64,000 bases of DNA from Heteronotia binoei (Eukaryota): assembly GCF_032191835.1 (NCBI RefSeq), contig NC_083236.1, forward strand, positions 72,292,001 through 72,356,000. The letters are read 5' to 3'. The translations under genes were made by a program, and so were the position numbers. Every line of letters starts with the position of its first letter. Within the stretch, counting starts at the first letter, position 1. Under the pieces are notes generated by a model. The model was given only the letters and a program-made list of their open reading frames with translations, made no database searches and had not been told where the DNA came from. This document shows, piece by piece, positions 234-30,594 of this stretch.

Positions 234-3200
234 GGGGTGGGGGGGCTCCCTCCTTGGTGTTCTGCCCCCCCCGGGTAAGTGCATGTGCAATACATCGCCT
301 CTCCTTTCCCGGTGTAGTGCACGCTGCGTGGTCACTGTCTGGCTATGCCTGGCAGATGGTCACTGCAATGGCCTCTCCTACATTACTGCATCCGTGGCAA
401 CACCTTCTCGCTGGTCCCCCCCGTTTTCACAGAGTTTGCCACGTCATGGTGCTACCGAATGTCCGGCGGTATAACCGGATGGGCAGGCTGCGCTCACCAA
501 CCTCGCCAGCCAAGAGAAAGAAAACTCTAACATCAAGCCCGGGCAGACAGAGCTCGTTAATGTAACATCTACCACCTGGAGGACTCTCTGCCGGCATCCC
601 GGCTTACTGGCCATGGCAGATGACCCCATGGTGAAAGGGTGGAGCCAGTACTGCGCACACTGCGCTTCACCTAAAAATTCTTCTGCGCAGGTCTGAAAGG
701 TATCCACATCCACAACCCACAACATACCAAGTCCTGCAGCGATGGGCAAGGGGCGAAACGGCAGGTGGAAGATGCCACTGGAAGCCGCAGTCCCGATCCT
801 GCATGTAGGCGGTTCAGGGTATTGGTCGCCTGATGCTGACCCGGAGACGAAAGCATTTTTTGGCAGCACCCTGAACGACCAAGCAGCCTTATTTAGGGAC
901 AGCACTGCTTGCTCTGTATGGAGAGGGGCCTAGAAAAGGTGGCCTAAACAAAGCTCATCTCCCCCCCCCCCCCCACTTGGATAGCCGCGGTCAACGGGCA
1001 TCCTTACTTGCGGTTGAAAAATAACAACAAAGAAAAGGCATGCACCTGCCTCACAAAGTGTGCAAAGACTAAAGCTTGCTTGTTGGAACATCAGAACCAT
1101 GCTTGACACAGTAGACAGTGGTCGCCCTGAACGACGCTCTGCTCTAGTTGCCCACGAACTTCTCAGGTTGAATATTGAAATAGCAGCTCTCAGTGAGGTC
1201 CGTTTCCCTGAGGAAGGTAGTCTTCAAGAACACGGTGCTGGCTATACCCTTTACTGGTCGGGTAAGTCAAAGGCTGAGAGCTGCCTTTCTGGCGTTGGCT
1301 TCATGGTCAGGAATTCCATTGCCTCTAAATTCGAAAACCTGCCAACAGGTCACTCGGATCGCATCATGTCTATGCTCCTCCCTCTTCAAAACAAGCAGCA
1401 TGCAACACTCTTCAGTGTGTATGCCCCAACCCTTCAAGCAGATTCTGCAGAAAAGAATAAGTTCTATGCTGATCTACGCAACCTCGTACGGAAGACCCCT
1501 ACGGAGGACAAGGTGATCATCCTTGGCGACTTCAATGCCAAAGTAGGTAAAGACTCGGAAGCCTGGAAAGGAGTACTTGGCAAACACGGCATTGGCAACT
1601 GCAATGATAACGGGCGCCTCCTGCTAGAATTCTGCACAGAGCATCAGCTCACCATTACCAACATTATCTTCCAGCAGAAGAACAGTCTGAAGACAACCTG
1701 GATGCACCCACGGTCCAAGCATTGGCACCTTATTGACTACATTCTGGTGCGCCAGAGAGACCTTCGAGATATCTTACACACCCGAGTAATGCCCAGTGCA
1801 GAATGTCATACGGATCATCGTCTTGTACGCTGCAATCTCCGTCTTCACTTTAAATCTACACTCAGGAGAGGCGGTATCCCCCGGAGGAAGTTTCAGGTCG
1901 GCAGCCTTCAGTCAGCCGAAGTTAGAGCTGCCTTCCAGGCAAAACTCCAGACAAGAATTGAGGGCCCCAGTTGCCTCACAGATCCTTCTCCAGAAGCAAT
2001 CTGGGAACACCTAAAAACTACCATCCTGTTGACTTCTGAAGAAGTCCTCGGGTTCTCCACAAGGAAGAACAAGGACTGGTTTGACGAGAACAATCAAGAG
2101 ATCCAAGAATTACTGGTGAAAAAGAGATCTGCCTACCAAGCACATCTTGCTCAGCCCTCCAGTCCTGGGAAAAAAGCAACCTTTCGCGCTGTATGTAGCA
2201 ACCTCCAGCGCAAGCTTCGAGACATTCGGAACGAGTGGTGGACCAAGCTTGCTGAGAGAACCCAGCTGTGTGCAGACACTGGTGATTTAAGAGGGTTCTA
2301 CGAAGCCCTGAAGCAGTATATGGTCCATCATATCAGGCTCAGAGTCCCTTGCGTAGTGCAGACGGCCAAGTGCTCCTCACAGACAAGGCATCCATACTGA
2401 ACCGGTGGTCGGAGTATTTTCAGGTTCTCTTCAGTGCCAATCGCGTAGTTCAAGATTCAGCAATCCACCTCACCCCACTTCAACCAGTGAAAACAGAGTT
2501 GGATGAGATCCCCACCCTAGAAGAGACTGTTAAAGCCATCAAGCAACTGAAAAGTGGCAAGGCAGCGGGAGTTGATGGAATCCCACCAGAGATCTGGAAG
2601 CATGGGGGCATAGTACTACATAGCACTCTTCACAAAGTACTTGTCACCTGCTGGGAACAAGGCAAACTACCACAGGACTTTCGCGATGTAATCATCATTA
2701 TTCTACATAAGAACAAAGGGGAAAAGTCAGATTGCTCCAACTACCGGGGGATAACCCTGCTCTCCATCGCAGGCAAAATCCTTGCTAGAATACTCCTGAA
2801 CACACTGGTGCCACCATTGCAGAAGAACTCCTCCCAGAGAGCCAGTGTGGCTTTAGAGCTAGCAGGAGCACCACCAACATGGTATTTGTTCTCAGGCAAC
2901 TCCAAGAGAAATGCAGGGAACAGAACAAGGGTCTATATGTGACTTTTGTCGACCTTACCAAAGCTTTTGATACCATTAGCAGGAACGGCCTGTGGCAAAT
3001 CTTGGAATGTTTAGGATGTCCCCCAAGGTTCCTCAGTATGGTCATCCAGCTACATGAAGACCAGCGAGGCCAAGTTAGACACTGCAACGATCTCTCGGAG
3101 CCCTTCCCAATAGGCAGAGGTGTAAAGCAAGGCTGTGTTCTCGTGCCAACTCTTTTTACGATCTTCTTTAGCATGATGCTTCAAAGAGCCGCAGTAGATT

Positions 3201-4308
3201 TAGATGACGACGATGGTGTCTACATCCGCTATCGCACCGATGGCAGCCTGTTCAACCTGAGGCGACTAAAGGCCCACTCCAAGACAGTGGAAAAACTTAT
3301 CCGAGAGCTACTGTTTGCTGATGATGCTGCACTTGTCTCCCACTCGGTATCAGCTCTGTAGCATATGATGTCCTGCTTTGCAGAGGCTGCCAAGCTATTC
3401 GGCCTAGAAGTTAGTATGAAGAAGACAGAAGTTCTCCACCAGCCTGCACCCCAGGAAGATTATCACCCTCCTTGCATCACTGTGGGTGAATCAGTTTTGA
3501 AGACAGTCCAGCAGTTCAGCTACCTGGGGTGCATCATCTCCTCAGACGCCAAGATCGACAAGGAGATTGACAATAGACTGGCAAAGGCAAGTCTATTGGC
3601 CGACTGCATAAAAGAGTGTGGAGCAATAAGCATCTGAAAAAGGGCACAAAGATCAATGTTTACAAAGCGGCTGTGATGACAACCCTCATCTACGGCTCCG
3701 AATCGTGGGTATTATACCGTCATCATCTGCCACTCCTTGAGCGCTTTCATCAGCGCTGCCTTCGCACCATCCTCAACATCCACTGGAGTGACTTTGTGAC
3801 CAACACTGAAGTCCTCAAGCGGGCGGAGGTTACAAGCATCGAGGCACTGCTGTTGAAGACGCAGCTGCACTGGGCAGGGCATATCTCCAGGATGGAAAAC
3901 CACCGCCTTCCCAAGATTGCCCTGTATGGCAAACTTTCCACCGGCCATCAAAATAGAGGGGCACCAAAGAAGAGGTACAAGGACTCCTTGAAGAAATCCC
4001 TTGGCACCTGTCACATCAACCATCACCAGTGGTCTGACCTAGCCTCAGATCGCAAAGCATGGAGGCACACCATCCACCAGGCTGTCTCTTCCTTTGAGGA
4101 CGCACGCATAGCTGGTCTTGAGGACAAAAGGAGATTGAGGAAGAATCGTACTGCTACAGCACCAACCCCAAATCAGACTTTTCCCTGCAGCCACTGTGGC
4201 CGGACCTGCCTGTCCCGCATTGGTCTTGTCAGCCACCAGCGAGCCTGCAGCAGACGTGGACTACTGCACCCTTCTTAAATCTTCATTTGCGAAGTCAAGC
4301 CGAGAGAG
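234..4308 (+). mobile_element. Full-length RTE-clade LINE (APE endonuclease, reverse transcriptase, C-terminal C2H2-like finger), inactivated
   Basis: ORF pieces 1060-2400 (ACWNIRTM, AALSEVR, YAPT, ILGDFNA, IDYILVR, TDHRLV), 2349-2942, 2879-3361 (VDLTKAFD, GVKQGC, LFADD) and 3616-4278 (CSHCGRTCLSRIGLVSHQRAC) are separated by frameshifts and a stop. (GA)n tail. 13-bp TSD AGATCTGCGAGTG at 221-233 and 4309-4321. Confidence 0.93.
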
Positions 4309-5974
4309 AGATCTGCGAGTGTTGTGGATGCCACTTGGCCTTTTTTGCATGACCTGTCTAAGCAGATAAACGCCACTTCTTTTCAAAGGAGGAGCTCTTG
4401 GCCCCGCCTTCAGCTGCCTGTGCATGACCTGCCCTGTGCGAGAGCCCAGGTAGGAAAACGGATCCCTTCATGCCAAGTCTCTAAGCCCTCTTTAATCCAT
4501 CGGCAATGAACTGACCAGATCCAACAGTCAGCACCCCTGGAGAACAGCTCATATTTCAAACAAATCTTGAAAAACCTGTAGAAGCAAACCTCACCTCCAA
4601 CACCCAGGCAACCCCCCCCCTGATCTGCACTGCGGGAGGATGGAACAATGAGGACACTGTTGCGATGGACCACAACAGTAGCTGGCCCTCTTCACTTCTA
4701 CCGTTGTTCAGAGCTGTGTGAGTAGCCCCTTGCCACAAGAAATGCCCTTACCCACCAAGTAATCAGCAAACAGGCAGGCTTGCCCTCAGATGGCGTTGGT
4801 GGTCAAGAGAATGCTTGCGGATAGAACTACACCATGGAAGCCAGAGGGACTCTCCTTTACAGGGAGGTGTCTGCAGCACTTTGAATTTAGACAGCATATC
4901 TACATCAAACCTCCATTTAAAAGGTAAAGGTAGTCCCCTGTACAAGCACTGGTTATTACCGACCCATGGGGTGGTGTCACATCACAGCAGAGCTGCCCCC
5001 TCACCGAAGGAGTGGCTGAAGGCAGAACTGCGCTGGGCAAGAGGAAATACAGAAGAGATGCTGCTGCTGGTGGTGGGGGAGGCCCAACCAATCAGCTCTT
5101 TGGTTGGGAAGTCCCTGATCTTGCGGAGGGCCCCCTCCCCGCCCGACTGCCTCCCAGTCCTAATACCAGGAAACCAGCAGACTCTGTCTGTGGAGGGCTT
5201 TTCTAACTGACTTTCAGATCAGATTACCTCCAAGTGCTTTATGTGGGAGGAGCATTCCTGAAGACAGACTAGGGACTGCTGTTGATCCAGAACATGTTTG
5301 CTGAAAGGTTTAATTGTTGTGCACACAGAACGTCTGCCTTGTTCTCAGACTTCTGCACTGGCAGGCAGCCTTGTTTCCTGCTTGCTTGCCTTGACCTTCA
5401 AAGCCCCCTCGACAGCCTCTGTGTGAGCCAGAGACTCTGCCATGTAAGCCCTGACCTGGGCACCATCAGTTGTGACAGCCAGCCAGCCAATGTCCTCATG
5501 GCTTCACTAATGGCAGATATACGGGCTACAGCTCGTGGTTTCACCGATGCCCTGCGGCCACCTTCTCCATTCAGTTTTAGAAACTGTGACTTCTCACCGC
5601 TCTGACTCAAAACCACTTAGGAGCCAGTCAAAGAGGTCTGTGACAGGTGCTGCTTCTCACTTTAATCTCACTAGATGCATCAGCCTTCTAAGCGCCAAGG
5701 AGGGGTGGGGGTGGAGGTGCGGCCAGGGAAACGCTTCCAGCCAGACGGGCCTCTTAGGCCACAAGGAATATGTGCAGCCACTAGAAACAGCCCCCACGAC
5801 ATGTGCGTGGGCATCATGCCTACTTCACTGATGATGATGGAGAAAGACACACAGTGGCAGGGCAGGCCGCAGTGAGTGAGTGGGCTCTGCTGAGGCAAGC
5901 ACTCTTTCCAGAACCTGCACTGATGATGGAGAAAGACACACAGTGCACCTTCAAAGCTGAGTATGGGTAAGGTA

Positions 5975-7963: not shown

Positions 7964-8087
7964 CAGGGGTGGCCAACAGTAGCTCTCCAGATGTTTTTTG
8001 CCTACAACTCCCATCAGCCCCAGCCAGCAAGGGCTGATGCAAGTTGTAGGCAAAAAACATCTGGAGAGCTACCGTTGGCCACCCCTG
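7964..8087. mobile_element. Palindromic hAT-type MITE in the TERF2IP 3' UTR
   Basis: TIR CAGGGGTGGCCAAC. 57-bp arms with 3 mismatches and a 10-nt loop. Perfect 8-bp TSD TTCTATAC (7956-7963, 8088-8095). Confidence 0.9.
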
Positions 8088-8237
8088 TTCTATACAGTTG
8101 GCAGAATGGAGCCACAACAGTCCATTTGGTCATGGCGGAGATTCAGAGGCAAGTCCTTGGCCTTGGTCCTACAAGCCTCTACTCCCCACTCCCTCCCTGA
8201 AAGGAGAGTAACCCTCACAAAAGGCACTTCCCTCAAA

Positions 8238-11200
8238 CTAGGTCTTCCTGAATGCCACGCGGCTGTTCACGTTCTCTTCTCCGTATTTAGCTCTAAGCTT
8301 GCTTCTGAGATGATCGTCGCCTGCCAGCAGGTCGAGGTCATCCTGCCTGGTCCAAAGAGGCAGGCAGTCCTCTGAAGGCGAGCCAGTCTGCTGCAGACAG
8401 TGGGCTACGGCCGTGACTTCCCCACTGGTTTTCAGAAATGCTTGAGTCACGGTGGCCAGGTCCACACCAAACTCTTCCATGAGGCGTTTCATGTCTTCAA
8501 TTGCCGCTGCCACCTGCTCAGAAGGCCCAGAAGACGGGCTCCGAGGGACATCAGAACCTTCACTGGATGGGGCCCCTCCCAGCCGGACTCTGGGACTCCT
8601 TGGTGCTTCTTCCGATGTTCTGAGCTCAGGGTGTTTCAGGAGCATGCCCCCTGAACGGCTTGTGCTCTCGCTTTCCAACTAGAAGGGAGCCAAAGAAGAA
8701 CGTTTCAGGATGAACACGAGCTGTTTCTTGGTGGGATTCAGAATAACGCCATTGGCCCTTGTCCCCAGGAGACGCAACACCACTTGCAGAGCCCCACACT
8801 CCTAATGACACCATCCGCTGAAAGAGCTGCACCCCCCCACCCCCGTGCAGGTTCTGGAAAGAGAGGGTGCTTGCCTCAGCAGAGCCCACTCACTCACTGG
8901 GGCCTGGGGAGGGAAGAGGCAGAGGGGAGCAAAGGGCACACGGGCTTCCCCCTGCAGGAGCCTGTTGCGGCCGGACGAGCCTCAGAGCAGGACCCACCTG
9001 GGCACACCCCCTTCCCATTCCTTGCCAACTGGGGACTGTTTCTCCAGCTCAGGGGAGAATGAACAGCCAAGGCCTTCTGCCTCCTGCCAAAGGAAAAGCA
9101 ACGGATATTCAAGGCTTCCCGCTGCAGATGAATGCTGTGAGCCAGCCAGCCAGCCAGCAGTGGAGTCCCTCTGCATCCCTCTCAGCCTTGCCATACTCTC
9201 TGCAACACGAGGCTCAGGAAACCGGAACACTGCAAAGGCAGCACCCAGAAGAGAGCACGCAGGCTGTGGAGAAAGGGGTGCAAAACCATCCTCACCACTG
9301 CCCGTCCCTCCCCATACCTGTCCCTTGCGTGGCTGCTGCAGCGGTGGTTTTACTCTCTCTTCTCTGTGGCCAGCACCCTCTCTTCCAGGCAGCTTCCTGG
9401 GGTCTGGCACGAGAGCCCAGAGGCAGAGGAGAAGGGTGTTGGGCCCTAGATTTCCACGCCTGGCATAGGGCTGGCAGCTCACCTGTCTGCCAGCAGCAGC
9501 TGTTTCAACCACTGGTGGCCACAAGACCCACTGAGCAATGTCCCTTCCCTTGCTTCCTTAAAGCAAGGGCAAAGAGGACTTGGGGACATGGGGCTCAAAA
9601 GAGCCAACCTGACTTAGCCAGCATCAGCACATGCTGCGCACTGACTGTTCACAGCCCCGAGGGAGAAAGCCTGTGATTAATTAAGTAGCAAACACAGGGT
9701 GGAAGATGGAGACAGACATGGGGAGAAAATCTCTTTTAAGACAAGCTTCAAAAGCAAGAAGTCACCTTTGACAACTTGTTGTAAGAAAAAATACAGAACC
9801 AATGAAAATGACAAGTTTCATCTTTCTGTATTCCAACATCACAGATGATCTATATACTAATAGCCAAATCTCTGGATAATTGAATCTGTGGCTCAGGCCC
9901 ATTTACAAAGAAGTAAAAAATTTCTGCAAACTCTGGAGACTCCCCAGGCTTGCAGAAAAATCTTAACGCAAGAAAAAAGGCTGGGGGGAGGTGTACTACA
10001 GGCCCTAGAAATGGCAGCAGAGCTGCTGGAGGGGAGCGGAGGAAGGACTGTCCCTCCTATCAGCAGCTGGAGGAAAAAGATGGCTGGGCGGGAAGGAACT
10101 CTGGCGGCCTGCGGATGGGGGGGCTGCTCCACCCACCAGCAGCGCTCTCAAGAGGCAGTTGTGGCCCAGCTGAAGTCTGGGCTGAAAAGAGATGGCCAGG
10201 GAACCACATGGCAGCAACCCCCAGGGGCGGTTGGCAGCAGCAGGAGCTGGGAGAGTCCTGGGGAAGGAAGGGGGCAACAGCAGGGCAGCTTGGATGGGCA
10301 GGAGGGGGAGCGGTGCCCACTATCTGAAGCAGCTTCCTGGGAACCCCAAGAAGACAGCAGCCCCCCAGAGAACCATGACGCACTGGTGCAGAGAGGACTG
10401 GGGAGGCAAGCAGTGAGGAGCCCCCCCCCATGAATTCTGGAATGCAAAGAAAACAGGCAGACAGGTGGCAGCGGGTGGGGGGGGGGGGAGAGGAGCAGAA
10501 GAAAAGGAATAACAGTGTGGAAGGGTAAAAGTCTGACAGCAAGAGTGAAGTGAAATAGAAAAGAGACAAAGAGAGAAAAGGAATAACATTGAGTACGTTT
10601 GGAGGATTCATTGTGATATAGAAAGAACTGAAAATAAAACAATATCACAATGCCATGGTATTTATGGTAGATAATCCAGCTCTCGCAAAGGATATTGTAG
10701 AGCAGGAGTGGCCAAACTGTGGCTCTTTCACACATACAGTGTGGCTCTTGAAACCCCCACTATCCTGTTGGCTGGCTTGGAGAAGGTATTTGTCTCTTTA
10801 AATCACTTCTCTGAGCCAAGTCAGCCAGGGTCCTAGAGAACACAAAGTTAAAGTTGCTTTCTTTCCATCTCTTCCTTCCCCCATCTATTTGCCTGCCTTC
10901 CTGTCTTGCAACTCTCAAACATAGGATGTTCATGTCTTGTGGCTCTCAAACATCTGACATTTATTCTACGGGGTTTTTATGCTAAGCAAGTTTGGCCACC
11001 CCTGTTGTAGAGTCAACAAGGGTACTCTAGAGAGCACTTAAAATTTTCTGGAGTTAAACCATTCCCCGTTTAGAAAGGTGGAAGGTGCGGGGCATTAAAC
11101 ATACAGCGGCCATAGTCTGCAATGTCACATACAAAAGCAGAACAAGTGAAATGAATGAGCACCTCGCTGCCTTCAAATTCTTGATTAGCCAGCTGGAAAA

Positions 11201-11281
11201 TGCTAGGTGCCTTTGATCCTTCTGCGGAGCACCTTTGATCTTCTTGCTGGGGTACGTCCATTGCTGTCTTTCTTTGTGGTG
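8238..11281 (-). CDS. TERF2IP: TERF2-interacting protein RAP1, exons 2-3 only (C-terminal RCT domain); exon 1 not found
   Basis: Last exon 8678-8238 (TAG acceptor, phase 0) encodes MKRLMEEFGVDLATVTQAFLKTSGEV...PLWTRQDDLDL...KYGEENVNSRVAFRKT*, matching the RAP1 RCT domain. Exon 11281-11163 (119 nt, CAG acceptor, phase 1 to 0, GTGCTC donor) encodes ...IFQLANQEFEGSE. Head-to-head with KARS1 as in human. Confidence 0.9.
10703..11004. mobile_element. Non-autonomous hAT DNA transposon
   Basis: TIRs CAGGAGTGGCCAAAC / GTTTGGCCACCCCTG. Perfect 8-bp TSD TTGTAGAG (10695-10702, 11005-11012). Confidence 0.85.
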
Positions 11282-11384
11282 CTGTTAAAGAGAGTGGCAT
11301 AACCATAAAAAAAGGCTTCTAGCTTCAAAGAGTGGCTGTGTGGAGCTGTAATAGAAGACTTAGATTTGAATACAGGTGCACCTT

Positions 11385-11660
11385 AGAATCATAGAGCTGA
11401 AACTCACAAATACCTCTTCACACACATACACAGTGTGACCCCGGCTCCATGGCCAGAAGACGGCAAAAAAGAAAAAGAAGCGAACAAAAAAACCCCCTCC
11501 AGGATCCCTGGGGCCAAACTGGCCTGGAGAAAGGCTGCCTCATCCCGAAGTGGCAAAGAGCATCTCCCTGGGCGTGCGAGAAAGGGCCATGAGAACTAAG
11601 CCCTGGGGCAGCCTTTCCTGCCCTCCTTCTCAGGACCTGCCCAAGGTCACAGGGTCCTCG
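11385..11660 (-). mobile_element. CR1 LINE 3'-end fragment
   Basis: TAGAATCATAGAG terminus; body is similar to the CR1 3' fragments at ~24585-24745 and ~40070-40530. Confidence 0.6.
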
Positions 11661-11673
11661 TTTCTCTTAGGTA

Positions 11674-14600
11674 ACCATCCAGCCCCTGCTTGAAAACCTC
11701 CAGGGAAGCAGAGCCCGCCCCCCACCTCCCGGGGAGGAAGCCTGATGGAAACAGGGAGGGAAGGGACCTCCGGGGTCATCCAGTCCACCCCCCTGCAAAT
11801 GCAGGAATCCCACCAATCCCCCCCCTACATTCACAGGGCCCTCCTTGCTGTCAGGCGGCCATCCAGCCCCTGCTTGAAAACCTCCAGGGAAGCAGAGCCC
11901 GCCCCCCACCTCCCGGGGAGGAAGCCTGATGGAAACGGGGAGGGAAGGGACCTCCGGGGTCATCCAGTCCACCCCCCTGCAAATGCAGGAATCCCACCAA
12001 TCCCCCCCCTACATTCACAGGGCCCTCCTTGCTGTCAGGCGGCCATCCAGCCCCTGCTTGAAAACCTCCAGGGAAGCAGAGCCCGCCCCCCACCTCCCGG
12101 GGAGGAAGCCTGATGGAAACAGGGAGGGAAGGGACCTCCGGGGTCATCCAGTCCACCCCCCTGCAAATGCAGGAATCCCACCAATCCCCCCCCTACATTC
12201 ACAGGGCCCTCCTTGCTGTCAGGCGGCCATCCAGCCCCTACTTGAAAACCTCCAGGGAAGCAGAGCCCGCCCCCCACCTCCCGGGGAGGAAGCCTGATGG
12301 AAACAGGGAGGGAAGGGACCTCCGGGGTCATCCAGTCCACCCCCCCCCGCACAATGCAGGAACCCCACCAATCCCTCCCCCTACATTCACAGGGCCCTCC
12401 TTGCTGTCAGGCGGCCATCCAGCCCCTGCTTGAAAACCTCCAGGGAAGCAGAGCCCGCCCCCCACCTCCCGGGGAGGAAGCCTGATGGAAACAGGGAGGG
12501 AAGGGACCTCCGGGGTCATCCAGTCCACCCCCCTGCAAATGCAGGAATCCCACCAATCCCCCCCCTACATTCACAGGGCCCTCCTTGCTGTCAGGCGGCC
12601 ATCCAGCCCCTGCTTGAAAACCTCCAGGGAAGCAGAGCCCGCCCCCCACCTCCCGTGGAGGAAGCCTGATGGAAACGGGGAGGGAAGGGACCTCCGGGGT
12701 CATCCAGTCCACCCCCCTGCAAATGCAGGAATCCCACCAATCCCCCCCCTACATTCACAGGGCCCTCCTTGCTGTCAGGCGGCCATCCAGCCCCTGCTTG
12801 AAAACCTCCAGGGAAGCAGAGCCCGCCCCCCACCTCCCGGGGAGGAAGCCTGATGGAAACGGGGAGGGAAGGGACCTCCGGGGTCATCCAGTCCACCCCC
12901 CCCTGCAAATGCGGGAATCCCACCAATCCCCCCCCTACATTCACAGGGCCCTCCTTGCTGTCAGGCGGCCATCCAGCCGCTGCTTGAAAACCTCCAGGGA
13001 AGCAGAGCCCGCCCCCCACCTCCCGGGGAGGAAGCCTGATGGAAACGGGGAGGGAAGGGACCTCCGGGGTCATCCAGTCCAGCCCCCCCCCCCCTGCAAA
13101 TGCAGGAATCCCACCAATCCCCCCCCCCTACATTCACAGGGCCCTCCTTGCTGTCAGGCGGCCATCCAGCCCCTGCTTGAAAACCTCCAGGGAAGCAGAG
13201 CCCGCCCCCCACCTCCCGGGGAGGAAGCCTGATGGAAACGGGGAGGGAAGGGACCTCCGGGGTCATCCAGTCCACCCCCCCCCCTGCAAATGCGGGAATC
13301 CCACCAATCCCCCCCCTACATTCACAGGGCCCTCCTTGCTGTCAGGCGGCCATCCAGCCCCTGCTTGAAAACCTCCAGGGAAGCAGAGCCCGCCCCCCAC
13401 CTCCCGGGGAGGAAGCCTGATGGAAACGGGGAGGGAAGGGACCTCCGGGGTCATCCAGTCCACCCCCCTGCAAATGCAGGAATCCCACCAATCCCCCCCC
13501 TACATTCACAGGGCCCTCCTTGCTGTCAGGCGGCCATCCAGCCCCTGCTTGAAAACCTCCAGGGAAGCAGAGCCCGCCCCCCACCTCCCGGGGAGGAAGC
13601 CTGATGGAAACGGGGAGGGAAGGGACCTCCGGGGTCATCCAGTCCACCCCCCCCCTGCAAATGCGGGAATCCCACCAATCCCCCCCCTACATTCACAGGG
13701 CCCTCCTTGCTGTCAGGCGGCCATCCAGCCCCTGCTTGAAAACCTCCAGGGAAGCAGAGCCCGCCCCCCACCTCCCGGGGAGGAAGCCTGATGGAAACGG
13801 GGAGGGAAGGGACCTCCGGGGTCATCCAGTCCACCCCCCCCCTGCAAATGCGGGAATCCCACCAATCCCCCCCCCTACAGTCACAGGGCCCTCCTTGCTG
13901 TCAGGCGGCCATCCAGCCGCTGCTTGAAAACCTCCAGGGAAGCAGAGCCCGCCCCCCACCTCCCAGGGAGGAAGCCTGATGGAAACGGGGAGGGAAGGGA
14001 CCTCCGGGGTCATCCAGTCCAGCCCCCCTGCAAATGCAGGAATCCCACCAATCCCCCCCCCTACAGTCACAGGGCCCTCCTTGCTGTCAGGCGGCCATCC
14101 AGCCGCTGCTTGAAAACCTCCAGGGAAGCAGAGCCCGCCCCCCACCTCCCGGGGAGGAAGCCTGATGGAAACGGGGAGGGAAGGGACCTCCGGGGTCATC
14201 CAGTCCAGCCCCCCTGCAAATGCAGGAATCCCACCAATCCCCCCCACTACAGTCACAGGGCCCTCCTTGCTGTCAGGCGGCCATCCAGCCGCTGCTTGAA
14301 AACCTCCAGGGAAGCAGAGCCCGCCCCCCACCTCCCGGGGAGGAAGCCTGATGGAAACGGGGAGGGAAGGGACCTCCGGGGTCATCCAGTCCACCCCCCT
14401 GCAAATGCGGGAATCCCACCAATCCCCCCCCCTACAGTCACAGGGCCCTCCTTGCTGTCAGGCGGCCATCCAGCCGCTGCTTGAAAACCTCCAGGGAAGC
14501 AGAGCCCGCCCCCCCCTCCCGGGGAGGAAGCCTGATGGAAACGGGGAGGGAAGGGACCTCCGGGGTCATCCAGTCCAGCCCCCCTGCAAATGCGGGAATC

Positions 14601-16870
14601 CCACCAATCCCCCCCCTACATTCACAGGGCCCTCCTTGCTGTCAGGCGGCCATCCAGCCCCTGCTTGAAAACCTCCAGGGAAGCAGAGCCCGCCCCCCAC
14701 CTCCCGGGGAGGAAGCCTGATGGAAACGGGGAGGGAAGGGACCTCCGGGGTCATCCAGTCCAGCCCCCTGCAAATGCAGGAATCCCACCAATCCCCCCCC
14801 TACATTCACAGGGCCCTCCTTGCTGTCAGGCGGCCATCCAGCCCCTGCTTGAAAACCTCCAGGGAAGCAGAGCCCGCCCCCCACCTCCCGGGGAGGAAGC
14901 CTGATGGAAACGGGGAGGGAAGGGACCTCCGGGGTCATCCAGTCCACCCCCCTGCAAATGCAGGAATCCCACCAATCCCCCCCCTACATTCACAGGGCCC
15001 TCCTTGCTGTCAGGCGGCCATCCAGCCCCTGCTTGAAAACCTCCAGGGAAGCAGAGCCCGCCCCCCACCTCCCGGGGAGGAAGCCTGATGGAAACGGGGA
15101 GGGAAGGGACCTCCGGGGTCATCCAGTCCACCCCCCCCCTGCAAATGCGGGAATCCCACCAATCCCCCCCCCTACAGTCACAGGGCCCTCCTTGCTGTCA
15201 GGCGGCCATCCAGCCGCTGCTTGAAAACCTCCAGGGAAGCAGAGCCCGCCCCCCACCTCCCAGGGAGGAAGCCTGATGGAAACGGGGAGGGAAGGGACCT
15301 CCGGGGTCATCCAGTCCAGCCCCCCTGCAAATGCAGGAATCCCACCAATCCCCCCCCCTACAGTCACAGGGCCCTCCTTGCTGTCAGGCGGCCATCCAGC
15401 CGCTGCTTGAAAACCTCCAGGGAAGCAGAGCCCGCCCCCCACCTCCCGGGGAGGAAGCCTGATGGAAACGGGGAGGGAAGGGACCTCCGGGGTCATCCAG
15501 TCCAGCCCCCCTGCAAATGCAGGAATCCCACCAATCCCCCCCCCCTACAGTCACAGGGCCCTCCTTGCTGTCAGGCGGCCATCCAGCCGCTGCTTGAAAA
15601 CCTCCAGGGAAGCAGAGCCCGCCCCCCACCTCCCGGGGAGGAAGCCTGATGGAAACGGGGAGGGAAGGGACCTCCGGGGTCATCCAGTCCACCCCCCTGC
15701 AAATGCGGGAATCCCACCAATCCCCCCCCCTACAGTCACAGGGCCCTCCTTGCTGTCAGGCGGCCATCCAGCCGCTGCTTGAAAACCTCCAGGGAAGCAG
15801 AGCCCGCCCCCCACCTCCCGGGGAGGAAGCCTGATGGAAACGGGGAGGGAAGGGACCTCCGGGGTCATCCAGTCCAGCCCCCCTGCAAATGCGGGAATCC
15901 CACCAATCCCCCCCCCTACATTCACAGGGCCCTCCTTGCTGTCAGGCGGCCATCCAGCCCCTGCTTGAAAACCTCCAGGGAAGCAGAGCCCGCCCCCCAC
16001 CTCCCGGGGAGGAAGCCTGATGGAAACGGGGAGGGAAGGGACCTCCGGGGTCATCCAGTCCACCCCCCTGCAAATGCAGGAATCCCACCAATCCCCCCCC
16101 TACATTCACAGGGCCCTCCTTGCTGTCAGGCGGCCATCCAGCCGCTGCTTGAAAACCTCCAGGGAAGCAGAGCCCGCCCCCCACCTCCCGGGGAGGAAGC
16201 CTGATGGAAACGGGGAGGGAAGGGACCTCCGGGGTCATCCAGTCCACCCCCCCCCCTGCAAATGCGGGAATCCCACCAATCCCCCCCCCTACAGTCACAG
16301 GGCCCTCCTTGCTGTCAGGCGGCCATCCAGCCGCTGCTTGAAAACCTCCAGGGAAGCAGAGCCCGCCCCCCACCTCCCAGGGAGGAAGCCTGATGGAAAC
16401 GGGGAGGGAAGGGACCTCCGGGGTCATCCAGTCCAGCCCCCCTGCAAATGCAGGAATCCCACCAATCCCCCCCCCTACAGTCACAGGGCCCTCCTTGCTG
16501 TCAGGCGGCCATCCAGCCGCTGCTTGAAAACCTCCAGGGAAGCAGAGCCCGCCCCCCACCTCCCGGGGAGGAAGCCTGATGGAAACGGGGAGGGAAGGGA
16601 CCTCCGGGGTCATCCAGTCCAGCCCCCCTGCAAATGCAGGAATCCCACCAATCCCCCCCCCCCTACAGTCACAGGGCCCTCCTTGCTGTCAGGCGGCCAT
16701 CCAGCCGCTGCTTGAAAACCTCCAGGGAAGCAGAGCCCGCCCCCCACCTCCCGGGGAGGAAGCCTGATGGAAACGGGGAGGGAAGGGACCTCCGGGGTCA
16801 TCCAGTCCAGCCCCCCTGCAAATGCGGGAATCCCACCAATCCCCCCCCTACATTCACAGGGCCCTCCTTG
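11674..16870. repeat. Tandem satellite, ~28 copies of a 184-193 bp GC-rich unit derived from a CR1 3' end
   Basis: The anchor GATGGAAAC recurs at 11745, 11929, 12113 ... 16579, 16767 (28 counted). Unit length varies mainly through poly-C runs. The unit's reverse complement aligns with the CR1 copy at 62720-62865. Confidence 0.97.
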
Positions 16871-17086
16871 CCATCCAGCCCTGGGAAGCAGCGGTCTCCG
16901 CCCACCTCTTCCGCTCGGAGCCGCAGGAAGTTCTTCCTCAGGGAGCCGGAAGTTCTTTCATCCCCCGACACCCGACTCCCGGCGAGGGAGGGAAGGTGGG
17001 CGGGGCTAGAGGCTGTGCGCATGCTCATAACTCCTCCTCCCCCGCCCACGTGGCTTCCGCTTCCGGGAGCGACCGCTGCCGGCAAG
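16871..17086. promoter_or_regulatory. KARS1/TERF2IP bidirectional CpG-island promoter
   Basis: ETS CCGGAAGT 16946-16953, GC box ~16998-17005, NRF1-like TGCGCATGCTCA 17016-17027, E-box CACGTG 17047-17052, tandem CTTCCG 17054-17066, YY1-type CAAGATGGCG overlapping the ATG. Confidence 0.75.

Positions 17087-30594
<13,508 letters not shown>

Follow-up and report, generated by a model that had tools for sequence, protein, structure and literature searches.

A likely RCT-only RAP1 (TERF2IP), lacking the BRCT/Myb-coding part of exon 1, in the gecko Heteronotia binoei

RAP1, the product of TERF2IP, is seen as the most conserved shelterin subunit, and BRCT and Myb as the parts of it that are conserved most (PMC8653790). 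Through both domains human RAP1 contacts KU and DNA, and DNA-PK is thereby prevented from recruiting LIG4 at telomeres (PMC12221994). Engineered RAP1 mutants (deltaBRCT / deltaMyb) neither bind KU nor block the recruitment of LIG4 by DNA-PK in vitro (Eickhoff et al. 2025, PMC12221994). Human RAP1 has 399 aa and carries both BRCT (PF16589) and Myb (PF08914), whereas the gecko protein described here has 179 aa and neither domain; the human and mouse genes resemble the gecko gene in their orthologous locus adjoining KARS1 and in their homologous exons 2 and 3. The full-length RAP1 of squamates (Zootoca vivipara, XP_034973529/30; Pogona; Phrynocephalus), like that of the tuatara, shares with the gecko the arrangement with KARS1 and exons 2 and 3, and differs by a 597-nt exon 1 with BRCT and Myb (HMM E=1e-87). 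We found no description in the literature of a truncation of RAP1/TERF2IP in geckos, lizards, squamates or reptiles.

The window, that is, the whole stretch of 64,000 nucleotides that was analysed, contains the true TERF2IP (RAP1) gene of Heteronotia binoei on the minus strand. Its position is that of the orthologous gene, head-to-head with KARS1, with a three-exon organization and exon 2 in phase 1. We consider it likely that TERF2IP of H. binoei truly lacks the BRCT/Myb-coding part of exon 1, and that a short RCT-only protein is maintained. RefSeq already contains the 179-aa model, and no paper discussing that model was found.

Exon 3 (8238–8678, minus strand; 146 codons plus the stop codon at 8238–8240) was delimited by its open reading frame and by Pfam Rap1_C, and encodes the RCT domain and, before it, a Ser/Pro-rich linker; its acceptor is ttctAG. 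The 3′ UTR extends below 8238, and an RNA contig reaches 8062. Intron 2 (8679–11162, minus strand, GT..AG) is about 68–69% identical to the Gekko intron 2 across about 1.9 kb in blastn, and contains TE copies at about 10684–11049 that are high-copy within the RNA runs. Exon 2 (11163–11281, minus strand, phase 1 at its 5′ end) was matched by lizard RAP1 proteins in tblastn; it has the acceptor ttaacAG/CA and the donor GAG/gtgctc, and it encodes the conserved helix motif KAPSIFQLANQEFE. Both the phase and the acceptor of this exon are conserved. RNA runs X4 and X5 both contain the exon 2/3 joint at 8678/11163 (CT..AC, equivalent to GT..AG on the minus strand), as does a 723-nt RNA contig of run X1. 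The RNA depth of TERF2IP is low; in X4 and X6 it is several-fold in the bin of exon 2 (11172–11293) and about zero in the upstream bin 11294–11415. A population indel after position 8519, seen in the RNA data, keeps the frame. The first-pass annotation, made from the sequence alone, had reported intact exons 2 and 3 with canonical splicing, an ATG in exon 2 that opens a 179-aa protein, and the retention of RCT, and each of these statements is upheld: the exons are joined in three RNA runs, and the spliced product, read from the ATG at 11259–11261 (context GCAATGG), has 179 aa and is identical to RefSeq XP_060109658.1.

This product belongs to the Rap1_C family (PF11626; E=4.2e-11, with 43.2 bits where the cutoff is 24.2), and was assigned neither to the Rap1-type Myb (PF08914) nor to the N-terminal BRCT (PF16589) family. 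Gecko RAP1 would be a protein of about 175–210 aa composed of an exon 2 helix (IFQLANQEFE), a disordered acidic Ser/Pro-rich linker and a six-helix RCT. In the AF2 model, RCT is a helical bundle predicted with confidence, and residues 21–30, over the exon 2 motif, form a helix. Residues 87–178 align with the human RAP1 RCT of the complex with the TRF2 RBM (PDB 3K6G; 3k6g_A, E=4e-20), which was also the top Foldseek match, with probability 1.0 but a modest TM of 0.47. At the position of human I318, a residue important for TRF2 binding, the gecko protein has a hydrophobic residue, Met96. The conservation of RCT suggests that gecko RAP1 may still be recruited to telomeres via TRF2 and still modulate TRF2, while the contacts of BRCT with KU70/80 and of Myb with DNA would be out of its reach. 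The gecko protein is a natural equivalent of a double deletion of BRCT and Myb, with RCT retained (PMC12221994). Unlike the engineered mutants, it is the only form found at its locus in geckos, where purifying selection has kept it over dS of about 0.6–0.8.

The statement that no RAP1 N-terminal peptide occurs in any frame of the window was confirmed by two approaches. The window has zero Ns, and tblastn with 11 representative RAP1 proteins, at least 4 of them with BRCT and/or Myb, found no BRCT/Myb peptide in it. A BRCT+Myb profile HMM, built from 28 sequences and run in six frames, gave E=7.5 as the best match of the window, that is, none, with positive controls at E=1e-87 and 7e-86; as domain controls, Zootoca, tuatara and possum presented BRCT. 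The same tblastn and six-frame HMM searches found no BRCT/Myb in Sphaerodactylus townsendi or in Gekko kuhli, whose loci are also free of gaps. A protein database search with the RAP1 N-terminal half, over matches of 207–658 aa, returned no gecko among the best 120 of 254 matches; the matches listed were from lacertids, Pogona, turtles, birds and mammals. The corresponding C-terminal search (207–658 aa) returned a 208-aa protein of G. kuhli as its sole gecko, with at least five gecko annotations represented in the searched database. Two Logan contigs with BRCT and Myb were considered as gecko sequences and rejected. One of them, L004, has KNSG in the place of KTSG and is without the extra Pro before LW, and its RCT is 53–59% identical to all squamates alike, which indicates a non-gecko source; the nearest relative of the other, L006, is Pogona.

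On the other side of exon 2, the proximal part of intron 1 (11282–11646, minus strand, 365 bp) is unique or TE-like in blastn and gave no BRCT/Myb signal with the profile HMM; homology to the Gekko loci ends about 18 bp upstream of the exon 2 acceptor. It is followed by a satellite of 5.2 kb (11647–16871; 28 copies of a 184-bp period, 97% matches), and then by the bidirectional KARS1/TERF2IP promoter (16872–17086), recognized by alignments. Of the elements that the first-pass annotation placed between exon 2 and KARS1, the 5.2-kb satellite and the 215-bp promoter are confirmed, and 11282–11646 would be its putative CR1 fragment. KARS1 exon 1 (17087–17143, plus strand, ATG at 17087) is head-to-head with TERF2IP, an order also found in Zootoca, Tiliqua, Varanus, Hemicordylus and Thamnophis; KARS1 was called beside TERF2IP in every fetched locus having that flank.

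In the gapless loci of S. townsendi and G. kuhli, KARS1 is followed by a mini exon 1 of 16–22 codons and then by exons 2 and 3, with 870 bp (S. townsendi) and 1427 bp (G. kuhli) from the KARS1 ATG to exon 2. Both species are RCT-only and without BRCT/Myb at the locus that the first-pass annotation proposed to compare; together with H. binoei, three gecko assemblies are without gaps at the syntenic locus and have no BRCT/Myb there. The annotated gecko RAP1 proteins, in a sample without Eublepharis and pygopodoid geckos and with the longer isoform used for S. townsendi, were RCT-only in 5/5 cases (174–209 aa). In G. japonicus, exon 2 was seemingly only 300 bp from KARS1, but what was called as the end of KARS1 resembles a TE, and a gap of 892 Ns interrupts the sequence about 1 kb upstream of exon 2; for both reasons this locus is uninformative.

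Within the promoter are a CCGGAAGCGGAAGC block, which is conserved, and, at about 17012–17030 (minus strand), a GAGCATGCGCACAGC motif that is the source of the mini exon 1 ATG in S. townsendi and G. kuhli. In H. binoei, the region 16872–17086 is, by its sequence, the putative site of the first exon. Four candidate donors (16972, 16906, 16858 and 16852) were scanned, and none of them is in frame with exon 2. Since no scanned donor frames the upstream ATGs with exon 2, the RefSeq prediction of the exon 2 ATG as the start fits, and translation in H. binoei would begin there.

All four geckos for which DNA was available have an intact TERF2IP open reading frame, and every indel is a multiple of three. 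Among the geckos compared (dS 0.26–0.8), overall dN/dS by NG86 was 0.30–0.39 in a first alignment and 0.33–0.43 in a second; in RCT it was 0.19–0.28 (NG86; bootstrap 95% upper bounds of at most 0.53), and in the linker it was fairly high, 0.34–0.73. The RCT values are close to those of lizards with full-length RAP1, such as Zootoca against the full-length-bearing contig L004 (0.16). Lineages with the RAP1 N-terminal half evolve faster there (omega 0.28–0.55) than in RCT (0.12–0.16). The motif KAP(S/G)IFQLANQEFE of exon 2 is invariant in the same four geckos save one S/G site. None of the marks of a pseudogene (frameshifts, stops, dN/dS near 1) was found, and these coding-sequence comparisons indicate that RCT and the open reading frame are under purifying selection in geckos.

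The first-pass annotation saw three possible explanations: the lineage naturally makes a minimal RAP1, the gene is decaying, or its exon 1 was lost in assembly. For an assembly artefact, a GC-rich exon 1 must have been dropped near or within the satellite, or systematically from gecko assemblies. Where lizards keep exon 1 its GC is indeed 0.60–0.78; short sauropsid RAP1 models are common in annotations (192 aa in Pelodiscus, 222 aa in Crocodylus) and probably come from gaps; and G. japonicus has its N gap at the expected place. However, the window is N-free, the KARS1 promoter and first-exon kilobase that adjoins (GC 0.68) did assemble, as did the satellite with its 65–66% GC, and a long-read assembler cannot excise an internal segment without a break. 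Exon 1 has a GC content no higher than that of the assembled KARS1 kilobase, which counts for a true absence. Assembly loss is also made unlikely by S. townsendi and G. kuhli, whose gapless loci, with 0.9–1.4 kb between KARS1 and exon 2, likewise have no BRCT/Myb. Moreover, the decay of Myb in situ in Varanus shows that such domains do erode in squamates. We regard the artefact as very improbable.

A gene that was split or duplicated, with a BRCT-Myb half or a full-length retrocopy elsewhere in gecko genomes, is improbable to a slightly lesser degree. The evidence of absence comes from syntenic loci and from proteins of 207–658 aa, the best 120 of 254 matches, which leaves some room for it; on the other hand, no gecko is found among the top matches, where the squamate N-termini rank (E of about 1e-50 to 1e-60), and a BRCT-Myb fragment without RCT would have no TRF2 tether. 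The least probable of all is a transcribed pseudogene heading for loss after exon 1 was lost. Two of three domains are gone, the linker has dN/dS of 0.34–0.73 and RNA depth is low, but the four geckos have an intact open reading frame with only in-frame indels across dS 0.26–0.8, conserved splice sites, a near-invariant exon 2 motif, and dN/dS in RCT well under 1 and similar to that of full-length lineages. Of the three explanations, loss in assembly and decay are improbable, and the natural minimal RAP1 is favoured by the RCT-only state in two more gecko genera, purifying selection and RNA splicing. Under a natural minimal RAP1, the deletion most likely preceded the split of Gekkonidae and Sphaerodactylidae, and the gene would then have continued with a mini first exon in the promoter shared with KARS1, followed by exons 2 and 3.

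A long-standing RCT-only RAP1 in a vertebrate clade would be a natural separation-of-function allele, and would reveal the indispensable activity of RAP1 as that of RCT plus the short exon 2 helix. It raises the question of how chromosome ends escape classical NHEJ without the contact of BRCT/Myb with KU. Such an allele could be studied directly by expressing gecko RAP1 in RAP1-null cells, by asking whether the acidic patch of KU70/80 has co-evolved, and by looking for compensation through TRF2.

The minimal state appears to be real but not confined to the lineage for which the first-pass annotation proposed it. Both BRCT and Myb are missing from the loci of the skink Tiliqua and the snake Thamnophis; the cordylid Hemicordylus capensis is without Myb, with BRCT kept; and Varanus komodoensis keeps BRCT, with Myb decayed in situ to a remnant with an in-frame stop. 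As in geckos, N-terminal domains were lost or decayed in these four and RCT was kept; geckos differ from Varanus in having no remnant at all, and from Varanus and Hemicordylus in the loss of BRCT. Recurrent loss of the BRCT/Myb module across Squamata, beyond geckos, is a reading that we put forward tentatively, at a little under even chances. If it were recurrent, end protection by RAP1 through KU and DNA-PK would have become dispensable, or have been replaced, early in the history of squamates; a function that depends on RCT, probably the regulation of TRF2, would have remained essential. Short RAP1 models in squamate annotations are not necessarily assembly errors.

The satellite presents, in addition to its 184-bp unit, a higher-order period of 372 bp; a 30-mer from the unit has 28 occurrences in the window, all inside the array. 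It would lie within intron 1, and a displacement of exon 1 by the satellite was considered and rejected: the 184-bp satellite is absent from the introns of S. townsendi and G. kuhli, and since these geckos are without both satellite and exon, the satellite is not the cause of the exon loss. Its unit has a 49-bp motif in common with a dispersed element of G. kuhli, and the array is probably a later, Heteronotia-specific expansion of a TE-derived unit in intron 1.

The TERF2IP gene of Heteronotia binoei lies on the minus strand. Exon 3 (8238–8678) contains 146 codons and the stop, with a ttctAG acceptor; exon 2 (11163–11281; acceptor ttaacAG/CA, donor GAG/gtgctc) has its 5′ end in phase 1 and carries an ATG at 11261 in the context GCAATGG. 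Unique or TE-like sequence (365 bp) lies between exon 2 and a satellite upstream of it, and 215 bp of promoter separate the satellite from the KARS1 ATG (17087, plus strand). Exon 3 matches Pfam Rap1_C (E=4.2e-11), and residues 87–178 of the product align to the human RAP1 RCT (PDB 3K6G, E=4e-20); the gene is orthologous to TERF2IP. The first-pass annotation had described both exons as having canonical splice sites and the expected phases, which is confirmed by the two acceptors, the phase 1 end and a joint in RNA-seq. The 179-aa product that it predicted from the exon 2 ATG is identical to H. binoei RefSeq XP_060109658.1, obtained here from the spliced CDS of exons 2 and 3; the short RAP1 model is already present in RefSeq.

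No BRCT/Myb coding sequence was found in the window by tblastn with 11 RAP1 proteins from a representative search, including those of Zootoca, tuatara, possum, Hemicordylus and Varanus, which matched only exons 2 and 3. With every filter disabled, a profile HMM of 28 BRCT+Myb N-termini was run over all stop-to-stop segments of the six frames. It recovered both positive controls, the Zootoca locus L007 at E=1e-87 and L004, a non-gecko Logan contig, at 7e-86, while its best match in the window, at E=7.5, is noise, and the earlier observation that no N-terminal RAP1 peptide occurs in any frame therefore holds. In database searches limited to proteins of 207–658 aa, the Zootoca N-terminus matched lacertids, Pogona, turtles, birds and mammals, with no gecko among the matches listed (120 of 254); with the Zootoca C-terminus, the sole gecko match was a 208-aa model of Gekko kuhli. 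Both results support the absence of BRCT/Myb. All the annotated gecko RAP1 proteins (H. binoei, G. japonicus, G. kuhli, Sphaerodactylus townsendi isoforms X1 and X2, and Euleptes europaea) have 174–209 aa and contain Rap1_C alone.

The missing exon had been attributed, as one possibility, to assembly loss next to the repeat. The locus of G. japonicus, interrupted by 892 N at 1 kb upstream of exon 2, is uninformative. The window has no N, and the loci of S. townsendi (21.8 kb) and G. kuhli (24.6 kb), also free of N, both lack BRCT/Myb signal, which argues against this explanation. In S. townsendi, the KARS1 ATG is at 9883, and TERF2IP has an exon 1 of 22 codons (10001–10067; donor CCCC/GTAAGC, phase 1), exon 2 at 10753–10872 and exon 3 at 11401–11841, so that the entire gene spans 1.84 kb. 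In G. kuhli, exon 1 has 16 codons (10001–10049; donor AGCA/GTGAGT, phase 1), and exons 2 and 3 are at 11298–11420 and 14163–14621. Where lizards retain exon 1 its GC content is 0.60–0.78, judged not to exceed that of two regions assembled in the window, the kilobase with the KARS1 promoter and first exon (0.68) and the satellite (0.65–0.66). BRCT/Myb has been lost at the TERF2IP locus in three gecko genera of two families, Gekkonidae and Sphaerodactylidae. The other possibility, a decaying remnant, is contradicted by the ORF, which is intact in H. binoei, G. japonicus, G. kuhli and S. townsendi with all indels in multiples of three, and by the dN/dS of the RCT. Pairwise NG86 dN/dS ranged from 0.30 to 0.39 for the whole sequence in a first alignment and from 0.33 to 0.43 in a second; values were 0.34–0.73 in the linker and 0.19–0.28 in the RCT (bootstrap 95% upper bounds ≤0.53). 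The latter resemble the 0.16 of Zootoca versus L004, both with the full gene, and show purifying selection on the RCT.

Exons 2 and 3 are expressed and spliced. Their joint (8678/11163) was seen in the RNA-seq runs X4 and X5, and also within a 723-nt contig of run X1. Coverage in X4 and X6 is several-fold over the exon 2 bin (11172–11293) and drops to about zero one bin further upstream (11294–11415), consistent with an internal acceptor at 11281. Relative to the reference, all four RNA runs have an in-frame AGA insertion after 8519 in exon 3, which adds one codon to the Ser/Pro-rich linker, as well as several substitutions; they therefore represent a diverged lineage under the same species label. 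Repeat copies at 8000–8121 and 10684–11049 show very high summed RNA depth, with many inverted joints and loose ends; they resemble high-copy SINE-like elements and do not look like part of TERF2IP expression.

The promoter motif GAGCATGCGCGCAGC contains the ATG that opens the mini exon 1 of S. townsendi and G. kuhli, which is in frame with exon 2 and encodes peptides with no conservation past MRAA. The motif is conserved in the window (about 17012–17030, minus strand). Counted from the upstream ATGs (17028 and 17022), four candidate promoter-proximal donors for exon 1 of H. binoei (last exon bases 16972, 16906, 16858 and 16852) all fall in phase 0; exon 2 requires phase 1, so an upstream start is predicted to be out of frame, in agreement with the RefSeq choice of the exon 2 ATG.

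The satellite (11647–16871) has 28 copies of a 184-bp period with 97% matches; one 30-mer of the unit was found 28 times in the array and at no other place in the window. Between Heteronotia and Gekko, exons 2 and 3 and much of intron 2 are homologous, up to a point about 18 bp upstream of the acceptor of exon 2, and so is a 48-bp block (17053–17100) that takes in the 5′ end of KARS1 exon 1 and promoter sequence next to it. The first introns of the other geckos (0.7 and 1.25 kb) lack the array, and a dispersed element at another position of the G. kuhli locus matches part of the unit. On these grounds the satellite is a TE-derived expansion within intron 1, specific to the lineage. Its role as the remover of exon 1 was rejected, since the other geckos lack that exon without having the array.

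Among other squamates, the gapless loci of Tiliqua scincoides and Thamnophis elegans also lack BRCT/Myb coding sequence beside KARS1; the entire T. elegans gene spans 755 bp, and 267 bp separate its start from the KARS1 ATG. T. sirtalis and Ahaetulla retain an intact RCT. Hemicordylus capensis keeps BRCT alone, and Varanus komodoensis (L010:5001–5843) keeps BRCT and an in-situ Myb remnant in the same frame, preceded by an in-frame stop at 5412–5417 and altered in its core from HSWQAMRDRY to HSRQAKHNCC (W to R; RDRY to HNCC); splicing of the annotated mRNA skips this remnant. Where the N-terminal half is kept (Zootoca, two Logan contigs, Hemicordylus and Varanus), NG86 omega is 0.28–0.55 for BRCT+Myb, values that are rough because dS is near saturation (near 1), versus 0.12–0.16 for the RCT, a reversal of the conservation that RAP1 usually shows. 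Taken together, these loci suggest that constraint on the N-terminal module is relaxed across Squamata and that the module was lost several times independently. The N-terminal extension of an Ahaetulla prasina protein (P0253, 442 aa) resembles an antisense translation of a KARS1 exon, as compared with the window minus-strand ORF 17006–17896, and is likely a misannotation, not a real RAP1 N-terminus.

The AlphaFold2 model of the gecko protein presents a helix at residues 21–30, disorder at 31–86 and a confident six-helix RCT at 87–178. The best Foldseek match was 3K6G (probability 1.0), with a TM of only 0.47, so the fold assignment is based mainly on sequence. The helix corresponds to the exon 2 motif KAPSIFQLANQEFE (KAP(S/G)IFQLANQEFE; 11190–11231, minus strand), which is conserved, one S/G position aside, in the four geckos with DNA and recognisable in turtle, crocodile, snake and skink RAP1; alongside the RCT, this motif may form a further functional element.

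The RCT binds the TRF2 RBM (3K6G), and gecko RAP1 should thus still ride on TRF2 at telomeres. Engineered RAP1 that lacks either BRCT or Myb no longer binds KU or stops DNA-PK from recruiting LIG4 (Eickhoff et al. 2025, PMC12221994); by analogy, gecko RAP1 should be incapable of both, and end protection from classical NHEJ would then have to rest on other means. BRCT and Myb have been described as the most conserved Rap1 regions, present in all metazoans, and the RCT as much less conserved (Myler et al. 2021, PMC8653790); geckos invert this pattern, with the RCT kept and BRCT/Myb lost. No description of a gecko RAP1 truncation was found in a non-exhaustive literature search.

Elsewhere in the window, a LINE (1060–4278, plus strand) has endonuclease and reverse-transcriptase ORFs in four pieces, split by frameshifts or stops. 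An ATG-initiated ORF in KARS1 intron 1 (17170–17320, plus strand) lies where we would expect the alternative exon of the mitochondrial KARS1 isoform.
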